From positions 806,001-870,000 of the forward strand of contig JAUPSS010000009.1 in NCBI GenBank assembly GCA_040285825.1: a DNA stretch of 64,000 bases, in the 5' to 3' direction. A program made the translations under genes and the position numbers. This stretch comes from Eukaryota sp. TZLM1-RC (Eukaryota; Protista; Metamonada: BaSk clade). Under the pieces are notes generated by a model. That model did not search any database and was not told the origin of the DNA. It saw only the letters and a list, made by a program, of their open reading frames with translations. Positions 123-57,639 of the stretch are shown one piece after another (within the stretch, counting starts at the first letter, position 1; the number at the start of each line of letters is the position of its first letter).

Positions 123-2143
123 TCAACCTCCAACTAACCGCATTTTCTCTAAAAGAACTTGCTCAGATAATGTGTATCTGATCCACCATTAAACGACAAG
201 CTTTCTTGTAGTTGAACACATCATTATCTCTGGTTATTGACCTGGGGTAACGCAAGGAACCATGCAAAACATACTGATGGTTTGAGAAACGAATCGTATC
301 AGCAGGGTCTTTTTCCCAATTAACAAAGAGCTCATGATTGAATTGATCCGCCAAACACCATTGAACATCATAAGCAAATCCTTGGTCACCTACTTCAACC
401 ACAGTGCATTTTTGATCATTGACTACTTTGACGGTGACAATATCATCATATCTGGGATCAGAGAGGGCTAGTTTGAGCTTCATGATGTTTAAAAGCTTAT
501 CATCAGTGACTTGCACACATTCATGGTCACGCATCGATTCATCTTGTAGAAACGCAACATCAAAGAAACCATCATACCATACTTTAGATCCACCAGTTTC
601 ATAATAAAACAGGTCATCTTCAAGATCATATGCCTGCACTCCCTTGATGTCCTTGGTCACATACTCGAAATCTTGAATCGCTATGGGATGTATTGCTTCG
701 ACGAGATGAGTACAGCTTTTGTCAAAATCAAAGATGGGGTCATTGGTGGCTAGCTGTCTGGAATTAGAGACAAAGATCAACATACTTGTGATCAGTGTAG
801 GTACGAGACTCCCAACTTCCATCGTCTATTAGCACACGCCACTCAAGGACAAACTGATTACAAACATACCATTCAGATTCAAAGCTAAGGACTCTAGACT
901 CTAGACCAATCATTCCACTGTCCTTGTAAAGAAAGCAATTCATATCGTTGTAGTTTGTTACACCAGCTGGCACAGTGTTGGAAGGAGGAATCATTAAATC
1001 GAACGTAGTGTACATTGAAATAAATTCATCCTCATTTGGATCAAGAGCGTGCTTGTGACAAGGACCAAAATTATCCTGGTACACTTCATAAAGGTTTTCT
1101 GGGTCAAACCAGATTGTAAAGAAATTACTTTGATGTGTTGCCTTGAGAAAGTAGTGACCATTAGCATGATCGAACGCAATAAGCATCAGTTGAACAGAAT
1201 CACCATCACCAAAACGATGCTCATAACGAACGCTAGCTTGCTGGTGAGGTGGGCTTGCGATGTCTCGACACTGCCTATTGAAATCCAAGAGTGGATCATC
1301 AGCCTTGATCTTTCTATGATTACTATAAAATCTAAACAAACTTGTGGTTTCTATATCTGAAAGATTCCCAGCTACCGTTAGAGTAAAAAATTGTTAATTG
1401 TTGGACGAAACGATCATGAATGCAGTGTTCCAGTGTCACAGTGTCATTTCCAACAGCTCTTGTTGATCGGAAGAGAACACATTCAACGTCACCAACTGTC
1501 TTGGAGCCCACTTTTTCGGCATCATTTTCAGGAATAGCAAAAACCACAGCAGCACCGAGTTCCTGAAAGAGAAAAGACGTTTCAAGGCGAAGACAATAGT
1601 CTGAGACTGAACTATCACCCTTCAGGAGAGCATTTTCCTCTTCACTGTACCAGAGCTTTACATTGTTCACAGTTCGATAGTAAGTTCTCTTTTCACTGTC
1701 AAAGGCCACAGTTGCTGTAACGGTTTTATCACCAAATGATACATCGTACTCAAATTGAACCATCTGGTTTGAGTATTGACCACACTCAATCGATTCATTT
1801 CAACAAGCCCAGTCCAACTTTTTGTTCTTTTAACTGGTGCCGTTTTTTGACAAGTTGGGCATCTTTTGATGTGGTTTATGAGGTCCTTTCTCATATTAGG
1901 CCAGAAAAAGTCGCTTTTGGACAGTTTATGTAGACTGTCGTTTTTGCTGGGGTGGCATTGATGCTTCCATTTGGCTTCTTCTTGGATGCCAACACTCGAA
2001 GCCATTATTGGAGTTTGAGTATAGACCATGAAAACAACGAAACACGACAGCAATATCGATGCAAGAATGGATCCACACAAGAAACATTTCAAGCAGCAAC
2101 TGGACTGTTTCCTTTCATAGTTGGGAAAATAGGCTGAGGACAT
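123..2143 (-). pseudogene. Type II membrane protein with three ependymin/LolA-fold-like repeats; disrupted by an integrase-fragment insertion and a late frameshift
   Basis: N-terminal TM (ILASILLSCFVVFMV). Three similar units (QC..F/YEY..A(F/Y)D...Y...W(Y/F)...C...IP...C...C...W...H) are joined by GT-AG introns at 1314-1341, 758-785 and 242-274. The paralog at 20379-22162 puts the true stop at the equivalent of 123-125. Confidence 0.6.
1776..1950 (-). mobile_element. Ty3/gypsy integrase zinc-binding (HHCC) fragment inserted in the ependymin-like gene
   Basis: HPSKNDSLHKLSKSDFFWPNMRKDLINHIKRCPTCQK matches the H-P-G...(Y/F)WP.M..D...V..C..CQ motif. The same insert is at about 20572-20746. Confidence 0.75.
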
Positions 2144-3728
2144 GAGCAGAAGAACTGGACATTATATCTGGATGATCATTAAGTATAATCATCAGTTCAG
2201 TGACATCTTGTGATTTCAAAAATAATAGTTGTTTCTGTTTTTCTTGTAATAGAACAAATTAAGAGACGATAGATGAGAGCCAATCAAAAAATGTCCTCAA
2301 AATGTTTCAGGTTTATGTTGATCAATGATCACGATTGTTATATAGTGTAGATTAAACATGGATTGGCAAACTCAATATGGAAACAATGTTGGCTCATAGC
2401 CATTTAGTAGATTAGATTAATAGTTCAGTATTACGTGATGCCACATCATCAGTGATTCAATTAGATTCTTGTTCTTTTATCTTTGTTTAATTCACACTCA
2501 TTTTGTATAAACCTCGTTTTTGAATTGTTTATTATGAAATCAATGCATGCGACCCCAACAACAAAGGATTTTACATTAGGTTAAATTTTTTTTGCAAATG
2601 AGTCTATTGTGTTCCACATCGTTTAAAGTAAGATTCTTCACAGAACTGGAGTGTTTGTGTCCACAAAATTAAAACAAAAACAAATATGGGGAAACTAAAT
2701 CAAATTTATCTCATTCTCTTATCCAATTTTCCGAATTTAAGACAATAATTTGTTTTTGCACTACTGAATAGAAATTGGTTATTAGAACCATACGGTGACA
2801 AATAACATTTTTTGTGACATATCCCTCATCGATATGGTATGTCATGATCAACACTATTGTTAACATTTTCATATTTCTTTCAGCAAATACCTTTTTTTAA
2901 CAAATATAATGTATAGTTTCGTCACAAACATCTAAATACCGAGTTATTGTATTATTGAAGAAAACAAAGTAAGCAATGGATGTCATTGATTTTCGCAGTA
3001 GTCATATCAATTTTTGATCAATAATCCTACATGATCAAACAATAGCGGAGTTGAAATTGATACAAACTAAAAACAGTTTCTGCTAACCATTGGAAATTTT
3101 TTGAATTCAATATTAAAATAGACCAATAGATAGGCATAAGTTCTTTTATACTTGCAAATTGCGAATTTTTTAATTTTCCAAGGAGATCTTGAAGTTACAA
3201 ACAATATATTGTAGAAGGAACTAATGGGCAGGATTTCGTACTGTATGTTCAAATCATTGGAATGAAGAAGATGAATTGTTTGATTAGAAAACTAAAGTGG
3301 TCTACTGTTCATCATTGTTATTTAGTTTCGTTTATTTATTTTATTATAAAGACAAGTTTTACTGTGGGACCTACATAATTGCAATAATTTATTGGTTCCA
3401 ATTTGGGTCTAGTTGGGAGGTCTAGCAACAAATTGCCAATTCAGTTATTCAGACCCCTGATTTTGTTTATCATAGTCTGTTTGATCTCAAAGTACCATAC
3501 AATTGGATTCAATTTGGATTGAAATTGGTTAGTTATACGCTCGTTTTAAGTAAAAAGGATTACAACCCTTTTCCAATTTTTCGAACGCCCTGGCACTAAC
3601 ATTAGTTTTGAAAATTGAGTAAAGGAAAAATTTCTCACTGATCAATTTTCATATTCATTTGATGACCAAAATGAAATCAAAAACAATTTGCAATCAATCG
3701 ACAATACTTGTATCTTCAACATTCAAGA

Positions 3729-4759
3729 ATGAGTACTAACGTCATCAAAGGTGCTTTAGAGACAGTCTTCGGTCAAGCGCTTAGTACATCTTCAGATCCT
3801 GATGTAGTGGCTCCGATCACGTTCTTTGACTTACACCATCTTTCTCTTCAGTGTGGCGCAGTAGGAGATCGTAGCCCTGATCTCATCACGGATGCCGTAG
3901 GACGTGGGCCTCCTGCCTCTAGCAACAGGCATTCGTCCCGGATCTCCGAACCCGATGGTCTGAAAGTTAAAACTTTGACAGGAAAAATCATTCCAATTGA
4001 TTTGCAAGAACTAGACACCGTTGAATCACTTAAGTACAAAATTCAAGAACGGGAAGGTATCCCCCCAGATCAACAACGGCTGATTTTTGCTGGAAGGCAG
4101 CTCCAAGAGGACCAACTTCTATCATCTTGTGGTGTACAGAATAATTCAACAATTCACCTAGTTCTACGTCTCCGTGGTGGCAATGCTGAAGTAAGACCAT
4201 ATGGTTTTGATATGAACATTGTGGACTCTGCCTTTAGCTTTGACTTTACAAACTTAAAAGACGATGGTACCGTTTTCTATCGTGGAAAACACAGATACTA
4301 TCGCCCATATGGATGGAACAGAATTGCATTGAAAGTGAAAGACAAGTTCAATGATGGTAACGAATGGCTAGGTACCCAGGGACTACGAACAAAGTCCAAC
4401 GCCAATGAATGGCCAGTTTCGTACCATGGTACCGCACACAACAGCGCCAACACTATCGCAAATGATGGTTTCAATCTCTCAAAGGGGAGAAGATTTCTCT
4501 TTGGTCATGGTATACCCTCATCATTTTGTTGCTCATCCAAGGTGTTTACACAACTCCCGACGTTGAAGTAGCAGCACTGTACGCACCAACATATGAAGCT
4601 GATGGTCGACGCTTTAAGGTTGTATTGCAAAATAGAGTCAACCCAGCTTCTGACAGACTGATCATTATTTCCAAAAAGAAAACCAAAGTGGGTGAATATT
4701 GGGTGTCTAAAGATGATGTTGATGTACGTCCATATGGCTTGCTCATCAAGGAGGTATAG
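3729..4759 (+). CDS. Ubiquitin domain fused to a NEURL4-like (PARP/DTX-fold, H-Y-E) ADP-ribosyltransferase; 332 aa, one intron at 4510-4541
   Basis: Ub domain KVKTLTGK...[13 protein letters not shown]...HLVLRLRGG, then [24 protein letters not shown]|[27 protein letters not shown] 32-nt GT..AG intron restores the frame. Confidence 0.85.
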
Positions 4760-6341: not shown

Positions 6342-8346
6342 ATGTCAAATCGTCGAGCTCCAACCTGTGACGAGACGTTTTCCCATTTTGCTGTCTGTCG
6401 TCCTCCTTGGAAACACCGTCGTCAAGATTTCAGCTCACCATCTATATGTGAGTCATACAAATGCTGTCTCTCTTCTCTACACATCCTCACAGACCTCCGT
6501 AACACCCCTCATCTCCGTGACTACACCCTTCGATTCAAGGGCGAAGAGTTTCCTGTTCATCGTGCTCTTTTGGTACTCTACTCAAAGTACTATCACAAGC
6601 TCTTCACTCTCAATTGGGTAGATTCAGATGATTCTTCAAGCGATTACGACCATCTTCCCGTCTCTTAGTCCTCCCTCAAAATCTTCCTCGATTACTTTTA
6701 TGGAGAAAGTATCGAATTCACTCCTGAAACGTTTTATCATTTCAGGTACCTCTCATCCTTTTTCGAGGTAGATTCACTCAAGGAGGCTTGCGATCATGTC
6801 ATATCTGTTCACTTTCAATCCCCTGACTGGCTCCTTCCTGCTGTGGTCAATGCTGATGTTAATGAAGACCAAAAACTCTTAATAAAGATAGGTTCCTACA
6901 TTAACTCAACAATTTTGGAACCACTCTCTCTTTCTTTTGCCTCTCTCTTGCTTGGTAGAAGAGCAGCAAGCTGAATCTTTTTGGTTGGTGAGGTCTGTGG
7001 TTAGGTCTTGGAAGAAGAACAATTTGTCTGATTGTCAAGTGGAAAAGTTGCTTGATATGATTGACTCTGAGGAATTGAAGATTGAAGAACTTTATGAAGA
7101 TGTTTTTCTGTCTTTTTATCAGCAAAGTCAATTTAATGAATTTTGTTTGAATTTTCTATTAAACATTTCAAAAATAATTCACAAATTCCACCTAAATGGT
7201 TCTTTTGGGTTTTGAAAATGGCTAATGAAAAACAAATTCATTTAGAATTTTTATCATCTTTTTTAATTAATCAAAACCGTGAAGAAAATGTTTTGGAATT
7301 AAGTTTTGAATCTTTTAAAGTATTTCAGCAATTAAAAAGCAAAAAAATAGGCATTTGGTTATTAAATTGTTTGAAGTTGAATTGTTTTGATTGGAATATT
7401 GATCAATTTAGTGAATTTTTAATTGGTTTTGATTTAAACTTATTTAATCCAAATGAAATTCAAGAATTGTTCATTAAACCATTTAATTCAATTGAAAAGT
7501 TTGTTGTGGTTATAAGTAAGTTTAATAATGAAATTGTTGTCCCTTTATTAACTGAAAAATTTGAAAATACTATCAAAGAAAAATGTGAGCATTTTTCAAA
7601 AAAGCAATCAAATTTAAGTCAGGAATTAGCTGAAACAGTTCAAATGAATAGTCAATTAACCACCCAAATTCAAGAATTAGATCACAAACTGCAGTTTAAA
7701 AACCAAATAATTCAATCAAATTTATCATTAATTAAGGTTTGTGTGTGGGCTGATTCAAGTTTGCATAATGACATTACCGAAAAAATTCACAACAGCATTA
7801 TGCAAAATTAGCCTAATCTAAACGTACGAATTACCTCATCTAATGAACCAAAATTAAACAACATTAATAATTATGATGTTGTTTTGTATAATACTTATAA
7901 TTTAACCATTCAAGCCACATTACTCCAACAAATAGTAGAAGCTGGTAAAGGCTTAGTTTTGTTTAGTTGCTTTGGAAATCGTATTAAGGGTGATTTTAAA
8001 TATGGAGCATTCAAGGGTTTGAGTGGTTGGAAATCATTTGGCTCTTACATTGAACTTAAATTGAACCAACTCTAACCAGAGTGATTTAATCATGAAATCA
8101 GTAAACTCTTTTTCTTGTCAGTATTGTGCAAAATACACTTACATCAACCCTGAATTTGAATCAGTTGCTACCTTGAAAAATGGAGATCCTTTGGTGTTGA
8201 AGAGTAAATATAACAAAAGTAGAGTGGTGGATTTTGCATCAGTTGGTCATAGTACTGATAGAAGTAGTTCGGGGTGGAAAAGCTCCACAGATGGTCATTT
8301 ATTACTGGCAAATTCAATAGTTTGGGTTTCTGGAAGGGATGACTAA
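6342..8346 (+). pseudogene. BTB/POZ - coiled coil - class I GATase-like domain protein, disrupted
   Basis: DYTLRFKGEEFPVHRALLVLYSKYYHKLF and IFLDYFYG form the BTB. In-frame TAGs at 6666-6668 and 7809-7811; frameshifts near 6940, 7143 and 8075. The C-terminal NNYDVVL...VEAGKGLVLF...NGDPLV...LLLANSIVWV resembles the repeats in 11148-14327. Confidence 0.75.
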
Positions 8347-15488: not shown

Positions 15489-16519
15489 CTATACCTCCTT
15501 GATGAGCAAGCCATATGGACGTACATCAACATCATCTTTAGACACCCAATATTCACCCACATTGGTTTTCTTTTTGGAAATAATGATCAGTCTGTCAGAA
15601 GCTGGGTTGACTCTATTTTGCAATACAACCTTAAAGCGTCGACCATCAGCTTCATAAGTTGGTGCGTACAGTGCTGCAACTTCAACGTCGGGAGTTGTGT
15701 AAACACCTGGAATGAGCAACAAAATGATGAGGGCATACCATGACCAAAGAGAAATCTTCTCCCCTTTGAGAGATTAAAACCATCATTTGCGATGCTGTTA
15801 GCACTGTTTTGTGCGGTACCATGGTACGAAACTGGCCATTCATTGGCGTTGGACTTTGTTCGTAGTCCTTGGGTACCCAGCCATTCGTTACCATCATTGA
15901 ACTTGTCTTTCACTTTCAATGCAATTCTGTTCCATCCATATGGGCGATAGTATCTGTGTTTTCCACGATAGAAAACAGTTCCATCGTCTCTTAAGTTTGT
16001 AAAGTCAAAGCTAAAGGCAGAGTCCACAATGTTCATATCAAAACCATATGGTCTTACTTCAGCATTGCCACCACGGAGACGTAGAACTAGGTGAATTGTT
16101 GAATTATTCTGTACACCACAAGATGATAGAAGTTGGTCCTCTTGGAGCTGCCTTCCAGCAAAAATCAGCCGTTGTTGATCTGGGGGGATACCTTCCCGTT
16201 CTTGAATTTTGTACTTAAGTGATTCAACGGTGTCTAGTTCTTGCAAATCAATTGGAATGATTTTTCCTGTCAAAGTTTTAACTTTCAGACCATCGGGTTC
16301 GGAGATCCGGGACGAATGCCTGTTGCTAGAGGCAGGAGGCCCACGTCCTACGGCATCCGTGATGAGATCAGGGCTACGATCTCCTACTGCGCCACACTGA
16401 AGAGAAAGATGGTGTAAGTCAAAGAACGTGATCGGAGCCACTACATCAGGATCTGAAGATGTACTAAGCGCTTGACCGAAGACTGTCTCTAAAGCACCTT
16501 TGATGACGTTAGTACTCAT
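15489..16519 (-). CDS. Ubiquitin-NEURL4-like ART fusion, second intact copy; intron at 15707-15738
   Basis: Near-identical to 3729-4759; 32-nt GTATG...CAG intron. Confidence 0.85.
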
Positions 16520-16590: not shown

Positions 16591-18549
16591 TGGTTATGAG
16601 TTAATTTAATTCAGTGTTTGCAATATATGCCAGAATTAATACCATATTTTCAATCAACATATTGCACATATTCTAATTTACATTTTGGTAACAACATTTT
16701 GATTTCATCAAGTGGCGTAAAGCAAGGAGATCCGTTAGGACCTCTTTTGTTTTGTTTGGCCATTCATCCTATTCTACTGCAAATTCAAGAGATGTTTCCT
16801 TCACTAAAAATGATTGCATATATGGATGATGTTGTGCTTATTGGTGAATTAAATATTGTGAAAAAAGCAACTGTATGTTTTAAAGAATTATTTACCAAAA
16901 TTGGTCTCCGACTTAATTTACTTAAATGTGTTTTGTTATCGAATTCTCCAGTTTCCACAATAATTGATGATATTGAAATTCAAGCCAAATTATATTCAAT
17001 TGATGCTATTCGTCATTTGGGTTCGTTTTTAGGAAATAATGATGAAATTACCAAAAAATTGTTTGAAAAGTTGAACTCAATTTCTGACAAAATTGACCGA
17101 ATGATGAATTTAGATATAAAAAACACATCAAATTTACCATTGTAAGACTGTGTTTTAGTTCCAATTTTAATCATATATTTCGATCTACAAATCCTCTCGT
17201 CACTAGACCTTTGGCTCAAAAGTTTAATGAGTTACGTGCAAAAGTTCTGTCTCAATTACTGGGATGAAAAATGTTTCAAATTCCAGATCATGCTTACCTT
17301 AGTCCACAATATGGTGGTTTAGGGTGGACGAAGGCTTCTATTCTTACCTCGTGTGCTTTTGTTGGTGGATGCAGAAATGCAATCTTTGAGTTCTCCGAAA
17401 GATTTGCAGATTGGGAAGATTTATTGATGACAACGCAAAGTTCCACTGTTTTTGCATTAAATGAAGAAATTTCAAGAATTGATGTAGAAAAATGGGGTCG
17501 ATGTTTTCCCCAATCATTCAATGGCAATATTCCAGAAAAAAATGTTTTAAATTTGAAGTATACTCTTCGAACATTACAGAAAAGATTGACTGGAATGTAT
17601 GAAAAAGATCTTTATAATAATATTTGCAGCTCGGCTGTTTTAAATCAAGATCTTCACTCATTGTTATTGGAAAAGGGTGTTTGTGAAAACAAGGTGTCAG
17701 ATTCTTCACTTTTTGTAACCATTGTACCACGAAGATTTGGATTGTGTGCTACTAATGAAGCATTTGTAACAAAAATGAGATTATATTTGAACATCCCCAT
17801 TAACCAATTATTATCAAAAGAAAAATGTATTTGTTCGAATTCACCTCAACTCACTTTGCGCCATGCTCTAAATTGCTCTAAATTGATAACTTATCGTTCT
17901 TCATTACATGATGCTGTTAGAGACACTGTTTTCAATATGGCACAAACTGCAAGGATATCGTGTATCAAAGAGCCCCTGCTGAAAGAAACACTTTCTCTGA
18001 ATAATTTTGGTTCTGATGATAGAGGTGATGTATACTGTGATTGGATTGATAATTCTGAAGCTATTGTTGACTTTGTCTCATGTAATGTTGCAAACGATAC
18101 TTTGGTTCACAGAAGAAAACTTAATCCTGTGGCTGCTCTGGATTTTAAAGCAAAAGAAAAACATAGAAAATATGATAAAGAAATTGAAGATGCAAATATC
18201 GATAGAAATACACAGCTGGTTTTTATTGCTTTCCCATTTTCGATAAATGGAAGATTATCAGTTGAAGCAGAAACTTTTTTGGATGACTTCCAAAAAATGG
18301 TGAAAGAAAAAACAATGAAAAGATTTGATATTTTTTTATGGCGTTCACGGATTCAATTTGCCATTATTAATAGATTACCGCGGTTTTTCAATCGAATTAG
18401 AGAAGCTTTAGCTAGACAGCAAGCAAATCAAGATTTTGTAGAGGAAATCTTGGTTTAATGATAGTCGTCCCATTAGTTATGATTTAATTTAATCAAGTGT
18501 GCAAATTCAATAAATTAAATTCAGTGTGCAAATTCAATAAATACAATAA
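16591..18549 (+). mobile_element. 5'-truncated CRE/R2-type (RT + CCHC + RLE) non-LTR retrotransposon with 9-bp TSD TTTGGTCAT
   Basis: RT motifs GVKQGDPLGPLLF and AYMDD; GGLG; CICx8HALNC; HDAVRD; RGD..D..K..KY. TSD at 16582-16590 and 18550-18558; empty site at 3662-3670. Confidence 0.92.
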
Positions 18550-20378: not shown

Positions 20379-22162
20379 ATGTCCTCAGCCTATTTTCCCA
20401 ACTATGAAAGGAAACAGTCCAGTTGCTGCTTGAAATGTTTCTTGTGTGGATCCATTCTTGCATCGATATTGCTGTTATGTTTCGTTGTTTTCATGGTCTA
20501 TACTCAAACTCCAATAATGGCTTCGAGTGTTGGCATCCAAGAAGAAGCCAAATGGAAGCATCAATGCCACCCCAGCAAAAACGACAGTCTACATAAACTG
20601 TCCAAAAGCGACTTTTTCTGGCCTAATATGAGAAAGGACCTCATAAACCACATCAAAAGATGCCCAACTTGTCAAAAAACGGCACCAGTTAAAAGAACAA
20701 AAAGTTGGACTGGGCTTGTTGAAATGAATCGATTGAGTGTGGTCAATACTCAAACCAGATGGTTCAATTTGAGTACGATGTATCATTTGGTGATAAAACC
20801 GTTACAGCAACTGTGGCCTTTGACAGTGAAAAGAGAACTTACTATCGAACTGTGAACAATGTAAAGCTCTGGTACAGTGAAGAGGAAAATGCTCTCCTGA
20901 AGGGTGATAGTTCAGTCTCAGACTATTGTCTTCGCCTTGAAACGTCTTTTCTCTTTCTTATAGTAATCATAGAAAGATCAAGGCTGATGATCCACTCTTG
21001 GATTTCAATAGGCAGTGTCGAGACATCGCAAGCCCACCTCACCAGCAAGCTAGCGTTCGTTATGAGCATCGTTTTGGTGATGGTGATTCTGTTCAACTGA
21101 TGCTTATTGCGTTCGATCATGCTAATGGTCACTACTTTCTCAAGGCAACACATCAAAGTAATTTCTTTACAATCTGGTTTGACCCAGAAGACCTTTATGA
21201 AGTGTACCAGGATAATTTTGGTCCTTGTCACAAGCACGCTCTTGATCCAAATGAGGATGAATTTATTTCAATGTACACTACGTTCGATTTAATGATTCCT
21301 CCTTCCAACACTGTGCCAGCTGGTGTAACAAACTACAACGATATGAATTGCTTTCTTTACAAGGACAGTGGAATGATTGGTCTAGAGTCTAGAGTCCTTA
21401 GCTTTGAATCTGAATGGTATGTTTGTAATCAGTTTGTCCATGAGTGGCGTGTGCTAATAGACGATGGAAGTTGGGAGTCTCGTACCTACACTGATCACAA
21501 GTATGTTGATCTTTGTCTCTAATTCCAGACAGCTAGCCACCAATGACCCCATCTTTGATTTTGACAAAAGCTGTACTCATCTCGTCGAAGCAATACATCC
21601 CATAGCGATTCAAGATTTCGAGTATGTGACCAAGGACATCAAGGGAGTGCAGGCATATAATCTTGAAGATGACCTGTTTTATTATGAAACTGGTGGATCT
21701 AAAGTATGGTATGAGGGTTTCTTTGATGTTGCGTTTCTACAAGATGAATCGATGCGTGACCATGAATGTGTGCAAGTCACTGATGATAAGCTTTTAAACA
21801 CCATGAAGCTCAAACTAGCCCCCTCTGATCCCAGATATGATGATATTGTCACCGTCAAAGTAGTCAATGATCAAAAATGGACTATGGTTGAAGTAGGTGA
21901 CCAAGGATTTGCTTATGATGTTCAATGGTGTTTGGCGGATCAATTCAATCATGAGCTCTTTGTTAATTGGGAAAAAGACCCTGCTGATACGATTCGTTTC
22001 TCAAACCATCAGTATGTTTTGCATGGTTCCTTGCGTTACCCCAGGTCAATAACCAGAGATAATGATGTGTTCAACCACAAGAAAGCTTGTCGTTTAATGG
22101 TGGATCAAGACACATTATCTGAGCAAGTTCTTTTAGAGAAAATGCGGTTAGTTGGAGGTTGA
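20379..22162 (+). pseudogene. Second copy of the 3-repeat ependymin-like gene, with the integrase insert and an internal deletion
   Basis: Inverted copy of 123-2143 that lacks the equivalent of about 1329-1565 and retains the full C-terminus. Confidence 0.65.
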
Positions 22163-27492: not shown

Positions 27493-28760
27493 ATGTCTTC
27501 AACACCTAGGAAATCCAAGTATAAGGTGTCGGTTCAACAATCTAAAAATGTTAAAAACCGATTTGAGTCTTTGATTCTTCGTTCGCCATACTGTTCAGTT
27601 CCTAAATTATTGGCTGGTTCTTCTCCTGCTGCCTTCAATGATGAAGCTTTACATTCTTTAAATTCACTTCATCCACCTGAAGATTTTACCATAAACCACA
27701 TTGTTTCTGATAATGAACGTGATTTCTTCACTGCTAATCCTATTACTTGTGATGAAGTCAGTGTAGGTATTAAAGGACTTCCGTCTGGTCGTTCAACTGG
27801 GCCTTCTAGACTCAGTTACGATCATTTGAAGTCGGCTGTCAACATTTGTTCAGAAATCGCGGATGATTTAGCTTTCTTTTTAATAGTGTTATCTTGGGAC
27901 GTTTTAAGTTACCTCAAGTGTTGAGGGCCTATCGTTGAGTTGCTTTAAGTAAACCTGTTGGTGGTGTCAGACCCATTGCTGTTGGTGAGTCCATAATGAG
28001 ATTATTAGCAATTATTTCTTTTAAAAGAGTTAAGTCATCCGCAATTATTTTTTTTCGTCCTTATCAGTTTGCTATTGGAATTCCTGATGGTACAACTTGT
28101 GCTGCGTTGTGTACAGATTTACTTTTTAATCAAAAAGACGAAAATTATTTGCTCAATATTGATTTTAAAAATGCTTTCAACTCGGTGTTTCGCTCAAAAA
28201 TATTACAAAAACTTGGACTTCATTATATTCCTCTTTTGCCGTATTTTAAATTGATGCATGGATCACCCTCTAACCTAATTATTCATTCTGAGAAAATTCT
28301 TTCGTCAAGAGGTGTCAAACAAGGGTCTCCTCTGGGTCCATTTTTCAGTTCCAGTTTGGTTCCAGTTTTAGTAGAATTTAAGTTGGATTTTCCTGACATT
28401 CATTTATGTGCTTATGCAGATGATTTATCACTTATCGGTCCTTTGTCTCTTTTACAGCAAGGGCTACAACATTTCGCTATTCTGTCCAAACAAATATGGT
28501 TAGATATTAAATTGGCCAAGTGTTTCATTATTGGTAATCAGAATGCGGAGGTAGCATTTAATGAAACTTTTATCAAATATGTTGATTTTGAGGAAGATGC
28601 GATTCGTTTTCTTGGCTCTTATTTTGGAAATAGTGAAAACATTAAATCGATTTTGACAGGTATTTTGGGAAAAATCGAAGAGCAACTTTTAGCTATTCAA
28701 GAACTAAAAATTGACAAACATTCAGCGTTTTCGGTCCTAAATGTGTGTCGTTATACGCAC
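27493..28760 (+). mobile_element. RT-domain remnant of a divergent RLE non-LTR family
   Basis: STGPS, GGVRPIAVGE (about 27960), QFAIG, IDFKNAFNSV, GVKQGSPLGP, AYADD. Confidence 0.88.
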
Positions 28761-30141
28761 TGGTAGAGGACTCAAACAATATAACTGTTATCAGTAACTG
28801 TATCAACAATAATCAAACCTAGCTGACGAGATAATGTTATTATATGCAGCTATTGTAAAGAATTGAAAAAGATGAACAAATGCATTCATTATTGAATACG
28901 ATTGTGTTTATTTTACCCATAATGTCAGATGTATTAAGGATTTAAGGGGACTTTTAGTACAGCTTAGATGTTTTTAACAATTATTTTGTCTCATTGACCT
29001 TGCAGATCGAGATTTTGTAAAGGTAATCTTGGTTCAATGAATTTTGTCTAATTAGTTACCAGTGCATTTTGTTAATTGTGTAAGTTCAATAAGATTATAA
29101 ATGTATGAACAGGAAAATCACTCGATCTCAATCCCATCACATCAGCTTTAAGGACCCATAATTCCTTGCTATAAACACTGTTTGTCACAATGAAATCTCC
29201 AGTATTACAGAAAAAGCCTCATATAGAAGAAAGTACCCATGATGTAAGTTCTGTACATGTGTTGCATTCTTCATGGCTTTATGATATGTTGGAGGTATCT
29301 CACCCAGGTGAAGGTCATCGATTGCATGACAGGCTGAAATCTAAACTCCTTAATATCGTCGAGAAGTCACATCTATCTCATGATGTTTACTCACTTATGT
29401 CACAAAGTACATACATGCAATGTGATTCTGATAATGAAAATCTGTTCCACTTTTTACAGGATGGACACCGTGTGGTCACTCTTGATATTCGCCAAACGCC
29501 TCCTCCCTCACCACCTCCTGAAGTATAATCATCATCACCCTTTGCGACTGATCCCCTTCTTAATAAGAACTATCAATGTTCTGATGGTGACCCTCTTGCC
29601 AAGCTTTCGCAAACACTTGATTATTACCTAAGCAACTTTAAGATGATATTGAACAATTTTCATTCTCCGGTACTTCCTATCGTCAACTCTACTGGTCTTG
29701 GGAAAACGCGCTTAATGTTGGAATGTGTGAAGACTTTTGATTATCCCAACACTAGAATATCATATTTTTCATTTTCTAGAATAGAAAAAAATAGAAACAA
29801 CTCCGAAAATGTCTGTTACACTTGGCCACCCACTGTGAAATTATCGGATATTTTTCAGGATTTTATTCCTTTAGATAAATCTTATAGCCTAGAACAACGT
29901 ATTGCTGTTGTGGTCATTGATTTTGAGTGGCTTATTGTTGAAATCTTGCAAGAATCTCCTCTGGACACTGTTTTATTGAACACTGCAGATGGTTGGATGA
30001 AGTATTCAAAGAGCATTATTTCTAGTACATCTTCCAGGTTTCTTTCCTTTGTGAAATCGTGCAAGCAACCTTTTGACAACCAGGATCATGCTCAGTTTGT
30101 AGAATCTCTTATTCAAGACTTGCCAATGGATAAGTATGTGG

Positions 30142-38891: not shown

Positions 38892-41394
38892 TCAAGATAA
38901 TTTATCATAAGCAGTGAGTAATTTTGAAACTGACAAGTTCCACGTACAACGCTTAGCTTCTCTTCGAATCTTTTTGATGTATTGCTTACGTTTTGTGAAA
39001 TTCTTCAATAATTGCTCCACTTCATTTACCCATTTCTCAATATCCGATGGATCTAAAGAAATAGCGGATTCTAAAACTTCCTTTACACCGGAGTTTCGAC
39101 TAATTAGAACTGGAGTTCCCAAAATTGCGGATTCAAGCGCCACTAGACCAAATGGTTCGGAAACAGAAGGCATTAGACAACAATCTGCCATTTTGAAAGC
39201 ATTCGTGGTATCTTCTCTTGATAAAAACCCTAAAAGATGAAAAGAATGACTAATTTCCAATTTTGCCAATCGTTCTTTTATCCAAGCCATCAAATGACCA
39301 TCCCCAACCAGAACAAAGCATAGGTTGTTCCCTTTTCGTAGTAAAGAATGTCCTATATCAACAAAATGCTGAAGCTGTGATGAAATTATAACAACAACAT
39401 ACTCCCTTTTGATCAGAAAATCTTCCAACAAACAGAACCACTCTCTTGTCCTTTGGGATCTTGTACTTTGATTTGAATTCAGCACTGTTATCAATATTGG
39501 TTTGATTTTTTGGAATATTTACCCCATTGTGCACAACAACAATCTTATCTCTTGCTACAGTGTTATGCTGTTTGACAATGTTATCCTTGGTATAGTTGGA
39601 TACACAAACAATCAAATCTGATTGTTGAATACCCCGGGATTCTATATCACTAATTTGGGTTATTGGAAAATCAGGATTACGATCAGATTCAAGCGAATGA
39701 AGGTGGAATACCAAAGGTTTTCCTGTTTTCCTCTTAATTGCAGCTCCTAAATCCACTGTTAACCAATCTGATACATGAATCACATCGAAATCTTCACTAC
39801 TGCAGTCATTTACGAGATTCTGATCAATATTCATGATATACGGCATATGGGGATGAAACAGCTGATGTTGAAAAGCAGTTGGATAAGTAGACATGTAAGA
39901 GACAGGAGCAACATACTGGTAGGGGGAATAGGATGTGTACGTTGACATGAAAGCTTGTGGCATAAATACTGAAGAGACGGGACGTATTACTTCATCTATT
40001 AGATCTCTACTTCCTTGACTATCTGGAATAACAAGGCGAAGATTAGCAGATTCACTGAGATGTTGACTTATATGAAAAGAAGCCTCGCCAAGACCTCCCT
40101 GGGGTGACAATTCCAAACGACATCACATACATTGATTTGCTACAATGAGATGAAAAAGGAGAAACATACTGGGGGAAATTCTGGTGTTATGTACAAAACA
40201 GTAGTACTAGACTTTGTTTTACAACAGGGCGATTGACGGGGCAAAGAGGAGAGCGTAGGGACCATTGGAGTGACATACTTCATGAGCTTAAACGTGCTAA
40301 ACTTGGTAATAACTCTTAAAACCTCTTGGTCTTCTACATTCTCGAATGGTTGGATCAGCACAGATTGCCAATGGTGGGGATGAACTTGTTCAACTGGGAT
40401 GGAACTTAAAGCACTGTCAAGCTCTTTAGCATTCCATCCCTTTGAGTGAAAGGATTCTGACAGTGAGGAAACAAGCCATGTGCATATTTCAGAATCATTC
40501 AGTAAATCAGATACCAAGAGTTTTTGGAAACCTTGGGGAGCAACTCTGATTGGATCACATGTCGAGTCCACCGATTCTTCAAGGAGGGGTGCGACCATAG
40601 TGATAGTTTCATAATCACACACCAAATCACTGCGAGAAACAAGGGATAGTAGAAACTCTGCATCTGATGAAGAGGAGAGAATGTAATCTTTACATTTCAA
40701 CACCAATGCTTCAACCTCGAAATACCGGGCTAATGAAAAGAACTCGTAAACATTCTTGTGAGTAACCTTGAATGATTGGCCGTAAAGGATGTTTATAAAC
40801 TTGCTAAACAGTGTATCAGAGATGAGAGATTCGAAAAATGTTACATTCGAACCGGAGTTTTCAGTAAGAGGAACATCAATACTACACCGTTGCTGCCCAG
40901 AACAAGAGGAGAAAAGTCGTCTTAAAGTACCACTGGAGAGAACCAATACAGCTTTATGTACAGGAAAAGTTGTTCCATCATAGACCAAGTCACAATCAGT
41001 AAAAGAGTTATCGGTAGAGAGCAGTTTCAATAAGATGTGTGGATTGATACAGTGGCCCTTGTCAGTTTGAACGATTGGTAATGAATTGCTTCTGTTTGAA
41101 GCTTCAGTTGATTCATCAGGTTGAGCACTAGGTAGATAAGCAAACTCTCCGGAAGACCAAAACTCATCGAGTAGATCTGATGAGTTGCGTTGTCGGTTTT
41201 CTCCATCCTCCCAATGTTCCTGATCGGGAAAGAACCACGTATTTGTATTCGACTTGCTGGAGATCTGTCTTTATGGATCCTTCCCAAGCACCCTCTGTGT
41301 AAGTCAGAAGAAGTGGATCCTGCCATTGGTTCCAAGAACCCTTCACAGAAACTTGATCACCATACTTGGTGTTCACGAATATGCGAAAGTACAT
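38892..41394 (-). CDS. CBM20 - BTB/POZ - GT4 (glycogen-synthase-like) glycosyltransferase fusion
   Basis: CBM20 (TKYGDQVSVKGSW..W...EYKYVV...WEDGENR) runs in frame from WEDGENR into the BTB (DCDLVYDGTTFPVHKAVL). GT4 motifs EFPP|QIN|GGLG, HVSDW, HLHSLE, FVGRFSDQKG, PSVSEPFGLVALE. Introns at 40140-40169, 40099-40130 and 39375-39402. One unresolved frame break near 41230. Confidence 0.8.
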
Positions 41395-41589: not shown

Positions 41590-42732
41590 TGTCTAATGGG
41601 ACGAAATTCATTGAACCAAGATTTCCTCTTCAAAATCTTGATCTGCTTGATGTCTAGCTAAAATTTCTCCAATTCGATTGCAAAACAAAGAAAATCTGTT
41701 AATAATGGAAAATTGAATTCGCGTGCGCCAATAAAAATTATCAAATCTGTTCATTGTTTTTTCTTGAACCATTTTTTGGGAAACCATTCAAAAAGGTTCA
41801 TGTTTCAACTGATAATTTTCCGGTTGTAGTAAATGGAAAAGCAATAAAAACAAGTGGTCTATTTCTATCAGCATTAGCTTCTTCAATTGCTTTGTCATAT
41901 TTTCTATGTTTTTGTTTAGCTTTAAATTCAAAACATTGATTCATAACTCATTCATTTCTCGGTCTTTCTCTCTTATTCTGAGTGGAAGTATCAAGTGGAC
42001 AATGGGGATGAAGTTGCTTATCCACTGTTTTGAACAAAAACTTTCATCAAAAATACAAAAAGGATTAAGTCCTCTTCTTTGAACCAAAGTGTCATTTGCA
42101 ACATTACAGGAGACAATGTCGACAACAGCTTCAGAATTCTCAATCCAGTCACAGTTTACATCACCTCTATCATCAGACCCAAAATTATTCAATGACACTG
42201 TTTTTTTCAGCAGAGGCTCTCTGATACACGAGATTTTTGCAGTTCGTGCCATATTGAACACAGTGCCTCAAACAGCATCATGTAATGAAGAACGATATGT
42301 TATCAATTTGAAACAATTCAGAGCATGACGAAAAGTGAGTTGAGGTGAATTCGTACAAATACATTTTTCTGTTAATAATAATTAATTAAAGGAAATATTC
42401 AAATATAATCTCATTTTTGTTACAAAGGCTTCATTAGTGGCACACAATTCAAATCTTCATGGCACAATGGTCACAAACAATGGAGAATCTGATGACTGGT
42501 TTTCACAAACACCTTTTTCCAATAACAATGAGTCAAGATCTTGATTAAAAGCAGCCAAGCTGCAAATATTCTTATAAAGATCATTTTCATACATTCCGGG
42601 CAATCATTTCTATAATATTCGAACAGTGTATTTTAAATTTAGGTAATTTTTTTCTGGAATATTGCCATTGAATGATTGGAGAAAGCGTCGACTCCATTTT
42701 TCTGCATCATTTTTTGAAATTTCTTCATTTCA
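41590..42732 (-). mobile_element. Decayed RLE non-LTR family A copy with an internal insert of about 115 bp
   Basis: MARTAKISCIREPLLKKTVSLNNFGSDDRGDV; colinear with about 17460-18470. Confidence 0.88.
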
Positions 42733-44179: not shown

Positions 44180-44644
44180 ATATGAACATTGTGAACTCTG
44201 CCTTTAGCTTTGACTTTACAAACATAAAAGACGATGGTACCGTTTTCTATCGTGGAAAACACAGATACTATCGCCCTTATGGATGGAACAGAATTGCATT
44301 GAAAGTGAAGGACAAGTTCAATGATAATAACGAATGGCTAGGTACCCAGGGACTACGAACAAAGTCCAACGCCAATGAATGGCCAGTTTCGTACCATGGT
44401 ACCGCAAACAACAGCGCTAACAGCATCGCAAATGATGGTTTTGATCTCTCAAAGAAAAAGAGGTTTCTACTTGGTCGTAATATGTTATCATTTTGTTGCT
44501 CATCCAAGGTATTTACACTACTCCCGACATTGAAGTTGCAGCAATTTATGCACCTACATATGAAGCTGATGGTCGACGCTTCAAGGTTGTATTGCAAAAT
44601 AGAGTCAACCCGACTTCTGACAAATTGGTCATCAAGAAGGTATA
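44180..44644 (+). pseudogene. Third, truncated ART copy lacking the ubiquitin domain
   Basis: MNIVNSAFSFDF...YHGT...; starts at the MITE end; damaged intron donor and a 3' deletion. Confidence 0.85.
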
Positions 44645-45104
44645 GATCATGTTGATATGTTAGGTTGTACTTACAATAAAATTAGCCATGTTGGACCTAA
44701 TGCATCTCAGAAACACAAGTAGGAATTTAATCTAATGATCACGTGATACTCTCCTGATCGAATAACTGACATTTGTTGCCCAAACACGTGGGGGTTGAGG
44801 CAAATTTGTTTTAATTTTATATTAATTTAGATAAGTGTAAGGGCGTGAGAACATTTGGATTAGACTATTTGCTATCCGAATTGAATGCACTGATGCTTTT
44901 GATTTTGTTTTGTCAATAATGTGTGTTCAGATAATGAATCTATGGTTGACTTATATGTTCAAGTCGAGCTTCATAAATTTTTGTAAAGATTATTTCAATT
45001 CATTCTAGTCAGTCGTATATATATATATATAAATTAATAGTCATAAGAACAATTGGTAAGCAATACAGCACGTCCATTTAAAAGTAAATTTACAATTTAA
45101 ATTG

Positions 45105-56279: not shown

Positions 56280-56664
56280 GAGTCAATATTTAATAAATTA
56301 TTTAAAGTTTGTTTTCTTTTTGTTGCAATAAAGTAGTTCTTCTATGGGTTTCTGAGCTAGAATTCAATGATGATTAAACTTGCATATCAACTGATTTCCA
56401 AGAACATGATTAACACGTTGTAAAAATGAGTATTTTAAAAAATTGAAGACGTTCGGCTTCTCTATTGGACATTAAATAATCTGATCATTCACTGACATAA
56501 CTTGGGTTGGTTGACCAAATTCCGACTCAAGCAATCACAACATTTAAACACGCTCAGCTTCTACCTGAAAGATCTCCCATTGATCGGTCGACATAGCACG
56601 GGAGTTCAACACTTCTAAAATCCATTATTTTCAGAAACAAGCAAAATAGATTGACTAAATTTCA

Positions 56665-57150
56665 ATGCATCGCGGAGGATTTCCTGGACAACGGCCTCAT
56701 AATAGAAGATTTCCCGGACCACATCGTGGGGGTTATCCTGGACAGCAACCACCTTGGCAACCACCCAATAATGGTGGATTTCCTGCAGCACGACCTGGTG
56801 GATTGCCTGGAGCACGACCTGGTGGATTTCCCGGACAACAACCACCTTGGCAACCACCCAATAATGGTGGATTTCCTGGACCACATCCTGGGGGTTATCC
56901 TGGACAGCAGCCAGCTTGGCAACCACCCAATAATGGTGGATTTCCTGGACCACATCCTGGGGGTTATCCTGGACAGCAGCCAGCTTGGCAACCACCCAAT
57001 AATGGTGGAATTCCTGGACCACATCCTGGGGGTTATCCTGGACAGCAGCCAGCTTGGCAACCACCCAATAATGGTGGATTTCCTGGACCACATCCTGGGG
57101 GTTATCCTGGACAGCAGGGTGGATTTCCTGGACAGCATCCCCGATATTAG
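56665..57150 (+). CDS. Gly/Pro/Gln-rich low-complexity repeat protein, 161 aa
   Basis: ATG to TAG; 69-nt (23-aa) units [23 protein letters not shown]. Confidence 0.7.
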
Positions 57151-57639
57151 ATTTTGTACAGATCCATTTGATCAGCTGTTATTTGTAAACTCGTATATAG
57201 TCTCTTGGTACAACACTTAGTTCATAATCTTTAATCGATTTCTCAACAATATTCTTCATTGGTTCGTCTTTAATGATTTGAGGCAAGTCGCACGTTAAAT
57301 GACATCAGAATATAGCTCGTATATCATTAAATATAGGCAGTATCTTGTCAATGATGGAGAATTAAAATCATGACAGAAAGTACAAGATCTTGTGGTTTTT
57401 TCATTCCTTGACTCTGTAAGCAAGATAATAATATCAATTGTTACTACATTTAGTACATTTTGCCTGGAATAATGTTGAACTATTCTCTTTTGTTCATGAT
57501 AAGAGATTATAACTTCAATGATGTGTTGTTAACCCAGAAAAGGTCATTCTGAACAAAAACTAGATGGATGCCAATCATAACATTTATTGAAATTTGTATT
57601 AGTTTGCGAAGCTATTCAGTGCTGATTTTACTTTCAGTT

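Follow-up and report, generated by a model that had tools for sequence, protein, structure and literature searches.

In the metamonad genus Skoliomonas, a glycosyltransferase of family GT4 with prokaryotic ancestry is fused to a head that comprises a putative starch-binding module (CBM), a BTB domain, and a helical region that resembles BACK. This architecture is conserved in two species: Skoliomonas litria TZLM1-RC, a soda-lake flagellate and haloalkaliphilic anaerobe (PMC11603281), and Skoliomonas sp. TZLM3-RCL (hereafter, RCL). As an earlier note on this DNA had supposed, the architecture seems to be undescribed: we found no published account of a CBM-BTB-GT4 protein in the literature that we searched, whose reach was limited. 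Both the combination and the presence of this GT4 family in a eukaryote seem, from searches of similarly limited reach, to be confined to Skoliomonas. Each component was already known, and CBM-synthase fusions exist in other protists.

Gene structure in S. litria and its ortholog

The S. litria gene lies on the minus strand of a 64,000-nt stretch of DNA (the window) and runs from an ATG at 41394 to a stop codon at 38892. The earlier note had spliced four pieces into one chain. All four pieces lie on the minus strand where it had placed them, with three introns between them, but exon 1 is one base off frame:

41394-40170 (minus): exon 1, 1225 nt, one base off frame
41230-41394 (minus): first frame of exon 1, which begins with the start codon and encodes the initial 55 residues of a starch-binding module of the CBM20/CBM48 clan (W24; E49-Y50-K51)
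41226-41231, at about 41229 (minus): TTT-CCC run in which the frame breaks, with one surplus base or two missing ones
41140-41228, 3' limit approximate (minus): second frame of exon 1; C-terminal portion of the CBM, with WEDGENR, which aligns with WEECENH of the RCL ortholog
40671-41018 (minus): BTB/POZ domain (Pfam BTB, E = 4e-14; alignments to KBTBD2 and ZBTB), with a helix ahead of the first strand
40270-40670, limits approximate (minus): helical BACK-like region; weak fold match to 3-box/BACK, no Pfam hit
40170-40199 (minus): start of GT4, VLYITPEFPP, which is the end of exon 1
40140-40169 (minus): intron 1, 30 nt, GTATGT..TAG, phase 0
40131-40139 (minus): microexon QIN, 9 nt, which gives the three residues of EFPP-xxx-GGLG
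40099-40130 (minus): intron 2, 32 nt, GTATGT..CAG, phase 0
39403-40098 (minus): exon 3; N-terminal Rossmann domain of GT4 (HVSDW, HLHSLESDR) and GR..QKG
39375-39402 (minus): intron 3, 28 nt, GTATGT..CAG, phase 0
38892-39374 (minus): exon 4; C-terminal domain of GT4 (SEPFGLVALE) and stop codon

The deposited protein model, KAL0207136.1 (P9112_012847), has the same three introns and carries both of the motifs that had been noted, EFPPQINGGLG and SEPFGLVALE. The GT4 exon is 100% identical to this protein, whose contig matches the window without differences over 17.7 kb. The model has 538 amino acids (1707 nt minus 90 gives 539 codons) and begins at 40598, inside the BACK-like region. The second frame of exon 1 is open for 353 codons from about 41228, across the BTB domain and into GT4, and its first methionine is codon 211, which explains why the deposited model lacks the CBM and the BTB domain. 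Thus, the frame break hides the architecture of the S. litria protein. Skipping of the microexon would preserve the frame, but it would remove three residues that are present in all of the aligned relatives. Bacterial contamination is ruled out by the introns, by the eukaryotic neighboring genes, and by the length of the contig (949 kb).

A protein search for relatives of the GT4 domain identified two proteins from RCL, KAL0210325.1 and KAL0210495.1. The first of these is an 807-amino-acid CBM-BTB-GT4 protein that is encoded by a single intronless open reading frame (ORF) of 2424 nt (L081:8001-10424). Because the ortholog is one intronless ORF, the architecture is that of a single chain, and the claim of one polypeptide stands. 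The pieces from S. litria have the same domain order as KAL0210325.1, with 24% identity across the head and 36% across GT4, so the order has been kept through deep divergence. The alignment of the two heads scored 156, versus 38 ± 6 for shuffled sequences. Beyond the fusion gene itself, there is no synteny between the two species. (The S. litria exons were searched singly; KAL0207136.1 and KAL0210325.1 were used for alignments, trees, and full-length fold comparisons.) The prokaryote-derived GT4 domain contains three introns in S. litria and none in the RCL ortholog, so either one lineage gained introns or the other lost them. Also in RCL, one product (L081:16369-18424, minus strand) matches both HSP70 and VWA domains.

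We considered whether the frame break could be explained by an intron. A 19-nt intron at 41238-41220 would have the donor GTGGTT, instead of the GTATGT of the three real introns; it would fall below the local range of 25 to 32 nt; and it would leave a Lys-to-Trp spacing of 4, as compared to 11 in RCL and 12 in a reference CBM20. With candidates of 28 and 34 nt, either EYKY or the conserved Trp would be lost. Introns of the local type do not explain the break.

We also considered whether the architecture might be genuine in the genus while the gene of S. litria has recently been truncated or become a pseudogene, encoding a 76-amino-acid fragment of the CBM or only the deposited 538-amino-acid BACK-GT4 protein. 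The ATG frame of exon 1 encodes 55 residues of the module up to the break and would reach a stop at 41164. Illumina reads were used to polish the assembly, the break site is unique in the window, the deposited model begins at the first in-frame methionine past the BTB domain, a nearby BTB paralog has a true in-frame stop, and S. litria has a His-to-Ser change in HxHDW, all of which would be consistent with decay. However, the break is the sole lesion in about 800 codons, and both flanks are free of stops. Also, the coding pattern changes frame at the break: by codon position, and in stretches that are short, the GC content of the ATG frame is coding-like before the break (0.53/0.31/0.47) but not past it (0.36/0.77/0.32), where the second frame is coding-like instead (0.56/0.42/0.33). 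The break lies in adjoining base runs of an assembly of R9.4 nanopore reads, which were Illumina-corrected (10.1101/2023.05.03.539051), and restoring two missing bases would make the Lys-to-Trp spacing exactly 11, as in RCL. Judging from the sequence, the break is quite probably an assembly error; a fixed lesion is unlikely, and a decayed or truncated S. litria copy is similarly improbable.

A GT4 enzyme from a prokaryotic glycogen-cluster family

In S. litria, both halves of GT4 scored above the Pfam cut-off (E = 1e-17 and 7e-25), in line with the complete GT4 that had been noted. It has the features of a retaining GT4 with the GT-B fold: two Rossmann domains, Arg and Lys (in GR..QKG), and E-x7-E, and the model matches GT4 structures with Z scores of 30 to 40. 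The aligned relatives all have the His, Arg, Lys, and E-x7-E, and both species retain all of the catalytic residues of GT-B. The family motifs EFPP-x3-GGLG, HxHDW, and HxHxxExDR are present as well, with one departure: S. litria has HVSDW, with Ser for the second His, where HxHDW is found in all ten of the other aligned proteins (HCHDW in RCL).

The earlier note had assigned GT4 to a prokaryotic type, rather than to the eukaryotic GT3 or GT5, and had proposed a phylogeny as a check. In our tree, whose bootstrap was not fully settled and from which most proteins of over 480 amino acids were excluded, all three GT4s from Skoliomonas group as a single clade (bootstrap 100, SH-aLRT 99) within the prokaryotic WEFPP..GGLG family. 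All of the traceable matches outside these three proteins are prokaryotic, and no ortholog from GEM-RC or Barthelona was among the best 150 representatives. A quick tree placed the relative P0054 as the sister group (support of 98), but this relation was gone in the careful tree, so we do not name a donor. The GT4 was also compared with models of the GT3 and GT5 glycogen synthases: exon 4 scored 29.6 bits against the GT5 model for glgA (TIGR02095), for which the cut-off is 328; the match to the Pfam model for GT5 is only partial; and there is no match to the Pfam model for GT3 (PF05693).

By profile comparison, the best relatives of solved structure are GlgM (PDB 6tvp; E = 3e-41) and the glycogen synthase of Pyrococcus (2bis; E = 2e-39). 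These have the GT-B fold in common with the Skoliomonas GT4 but are only 20-24% identical to it, and the fold matches are spread over many GT4s of differing chemistry. The model for GlgM (TIGR02149, cut-off of 302 bits) does not recognize the S. litria protein, whose two exons scored 62 and 32 bits, or its close prokaryotic relatives (110-126 bits). We did not find a characterized member of the WEFPP..GGLG family.

The genomic context of the prokaryotic relatives links them to glycogen. Among 80 prokaryotic loci, which were gathered with one family member (P0004) and not with the Skoliomonas protein, GH57 is present in 73, a debranching enzyme in 26 to 36, a GT3 glycogen synthase in 28, and a GalT-like gene in 13; GT3 is not within the fetched flank of the other 52. 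The closer relatives lie in the order GDE-GT4-GH57-GT3/phosphorylase (P0054) or GT4-GH57, and one close relative has no glycogen operon context. In a metagenomic operon (L084:4056-12643), GDE, GT4, and GH57 are followed by a 1394-amino-acid fusion of GT3 glycogen synthase and phosphorylase. A 2024 review described clusters of GT4, GH133, and GH57 and stated that the role of GT4 "requires clarification" (PMC11046441).

Skoliomonas GT4 resembles this prokaryotic GT4-GH57-GH133(-GT3) family in sequence (30-38% identity), in all of the invariant motifs, and in its nested position in the tree. However, the prokaryotic proteins are stand-alone, operonic, and of about 400-430 amino acids, whereas the Skoliomonas protein is a eukaryotic CBM/BTB/BACK-like fusion, with introns in S. 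litria. There is no operon of GH57, GDE, and GT3 around the Skoliomonas gene, and its neighbors are unrelated and eukaryotic, which is expected after transfer. Because the Skoliomonas clade lies inside a prokaryotic family whose genes adjoin those for GH57, debranching enzyme, and GT3, lateral transfer and a role in alpha-glucan metabolism are both well supported. A role as the main glycogen synthase is not well supported, because GT3 often adjoins the prokaryotic relatives. Thus, of the proposal of a laterally acquired glucan synthase, the transfer and the glycogen context are supported, and the enzyme is at most a candidate synthase.

The second RCL protein, KAL0210495.1 (874 amino acids; L082:5001-7625), combines a protein kinase, a coiled coil, and GT4. 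It has no CBM, its gene is intronless, and the HRD and DFG motifs of the kinase are intact. The gene is about 15 kb from that of KAL0210325.1, on the same contig. At the DNA level, most of GT4 is 93% identical between the two genes, and the likeness begins at the first GT4 residue. Since the kinase replaced the head exactly at this residue, GT4 is the constant part. Over the last 285 codons, the two GT4s differ by 24 synonymous and 23 nonsynonymous changes, versus a ratio of about one to three expected without selection (a rule of thumb). Together, the junction and these counts show that GT4 is a unit that is kept while its heads are exchangeable. Domestication of a transferred enzyme by head-swapping is clear here, with CBM-BTB or a kinase at the same junction; in S. 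litria, introns contributed as well, two of them around a 9-nt microexon that encodes part of a conserved loop.

The CBM-BTB head and the cullin question

The N-terminal module, which had been called a CBM20, scored below the Pfam cut-offs in S. litria (E = 8e-5 for AMPK1_CBM and 2e-3 for CBM_20). Specifically, CBM_20 gave 18.4 bits for the S. litria piece and 21.1 bits for RCL (over positions 3-88 of 97 in the profile), as compared to the gathering threshold of 23.3, and AMPK1_CBM (CBM48) scored about equally. Binding site 1 of CBM20 is formed by W543/E576/K578/W590 (PMC9069913). This W / E-x-K / W pattern, mapped by motif and spacing, is kept in both species: the equivalents are W24, K51, and the Trp at 41213-41211 in S. 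litria and W29, K57, and W68 in RCL. The label CBM20 is consistent with the site-1 residues and the scores, if below the cut-off, and the module probably binds glycogen. No relative of the head was found in two metagenome scans, and a word search with the RCL head returned only itself; the word search also missed KAL0207136.1, so its blanks are weak.

The BTB domain scored above the Pfam cut-off in RCL (E = 2e-10) as well as in S. litria, and it appears to be the long, dimer-type form. It is followed by about 130 helical residues for which a low-confidence model (pLDDT 51) gave Atlas TM scores of 0.43-0.50 to BTB-BACK proteins. In Foldseek, also with low-confidence models, this region matched best to chains from Cul3 complexes, namely KLHL11 and KBTBD2 (E = 4e-3 to 4e-2). 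KBTBD2 also aligns in sequence beyond the BTB domain, although Pfam BACK does not match.

These similarities bear on the proposal that the protein is a Cul3 adaptor that is targeted to glycogen. The BTB-BACK region would bind cullin-RBX1 and the CBM would localize the complex; GT4 would serve as an enzyme, a metabolite sensor, or a dock for substrates, and either glycogen-bound proteins or the fusion itself would be ubiquitinated. In KLHL3, mutating the glutamate of the phi-x-E motif severely disrupts binding to Cul3 (PMC3616122). The sequence at this position, in the alpha3-beta4 loop, is LSE in KBTBD2, CSGQQ in S. litria, and QNECE in RCL, so the canonical motif is absent from both Skoliomonas species. 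An L-x-E is conserved in both species slightly downstream, which might favor an adaptor, but its register is uncertain and it may lie within the next strand. A BTB paralog in the window (6402-7811, plus strand), which is broken by a TAG in frame at 6666 and by a shift of frame near 6950, retains W-V-D at the phi-x-E position. Given the fold and sequence matches to KBTBD2 and KLHL11 on the one hand, and the altered loop, the paralog's W-V-D, the low-confidence models, and the lack of a Pfam BACK match on the other, Cul3 binding by the head is possible, but we doubt that the protein is such an adaptor or that it works in this way. Most likely, the head descended from an adaptor-type BTB-BACK protein and is now a dimerizing spacer.

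Adaptors such as KLHL/KBTBD proteins and SPOP also have BTB followed by BACK-like helices, with ligand-binding domains on the flanks. In contrast, the Skoliomonas protein has an intact enzyme in place of Kelch or MATH and lacks the canonical phi-x-E.

In laforin-malin, glycogen targeting of the CBM20 type is joined to ubiquitin function. The earlier note had drawn this comparison. The Skoliomonas protein would share targeting of this type and, possibly, a ubiquitin function, but it lacks the dual-specificity phosphatase, RING, and NHL domains; its enzyme is a transferase, and homology is limited to the CBM. Domain scans of KAL0210325.1 and of the window pieces identified neither a RING nor a phosphatase domain. 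Because neither species has the canonical phi-x-E, the Cul3 or laforin-malin reading is a minority option; the BACK-like region speaks for it, and the exchange of the head for a kinase does not.

Less probable still is a cullin-RING adaptor that also has activity of its own as a glycogen enzyme obtained by lateral transfer; it would bind the granule, make or sense glucan, and recruit ubiquitination. If the head does bind Cul3, it would place an enzyme-bearing ligase adaptor on glycogen. If the adaptor is also an enzyme, then together with its kinase-headed sister, a prokaryotic enzyme would have been wired twice into eukaryotic signaling, as an independent counterpart of the laforin-malin control.

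Proposed function

The fusion may well be a dimeric, granule-bound accessory alpha-glucosyltransferase, and we put the chance of this at about even. An ancestral skoliomonad would have taken up a GT4 alpha-glucosyltransferase from the GH57/GH133/GT3 glycogen-cluster family of prokaryotes and fused it to the end of its own CBM20-BTB-BACK head. The CBM would dock the protein onto the glycogen particle. BTB-BACK would dimerize it and space the CBM from the enzyme, so that each dimer would have two binding modules and two active sites. GT4 would move glucose from an NDP-glucose to the ends of glycogen or to short malto-oligosaccharides. In this it would assist the main glycogen synthase: it might prime, extend short chains, or form a small glucoside.

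Instead, GT4 might be a processive glycogen synthase, or its chemistry might have drifted (for instance, to a compatible solute for life in a soda lake), in which case CBM-BTB would be just one of many shuffled heads. The review cited above speculated that GT4 is the synthase in Methanoculleus, which has neither GT3 nor GT5 (PMC11046441), and this option would also fit the 52 of 80 loci without GT3 in the fetched flank and the kinase-headed RCL copy without a CBM. However, 28 loci have a GT3 synthase together with GT4, as does the P0054 operon, and the order CBM-BTB-GT4 is conserved across two distant species. We consider a processive synthase or drifted chemistry to be unlikely.

Protist CBM-GT5 proteins (Atlas clusters) and a myzozoan fusion, CBM48-BE2-GT4-BE2, whose GT4 is of proposed algal origin (bioRxiv 10.64898/2026.09.25.754361), also combine a glycogen- or starch-binding module with a GT-B transferase. 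They differ in that BTB is not among their listed families and in the type of transferase, which Pfam assigns to GT5 in the former and which is the putatively algal GT4 in the latter. The Skoliomonas fusion offers a eukaryotic handle on a GT4 family that is widespread in prokaryotic glycogen clusters and whose role "requires clarification" (PMC11046441). That a eukaryote joined a module that probably binds glycogen to this GT4 would be independent evidence that the family acts on alpha-glucan.

The window has several other features. ORF fragments that resemble non-LTR retroelements, some of them frameshifted, are at 16618-18458, 27493-28766, and 41608-42261, the last being just upstream of the fusion gene. 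Three gene copies (3708-4571, plus strand; 15587-16519, minus strand; and 44182-44655, plus strand) encode a conserved YHGT-type C-terminal domain that is ADP-ribosyltransferase-like by motif only. Two of these copies have a ubiquitin-like domain in the listed ORF, and the third has a 32-nt intron that begins with GTAATAT. A near-identical inverted duplication (163-2143, minus strand, and 20379-22162, plus strand) contains three to four ORFs, with the two copies about 20 kb apart. Finally, an ORF at 56615-57220 consists of tandem repeats that are rich in proline, glycine, and glutamine, and several frames are open there on both strands.
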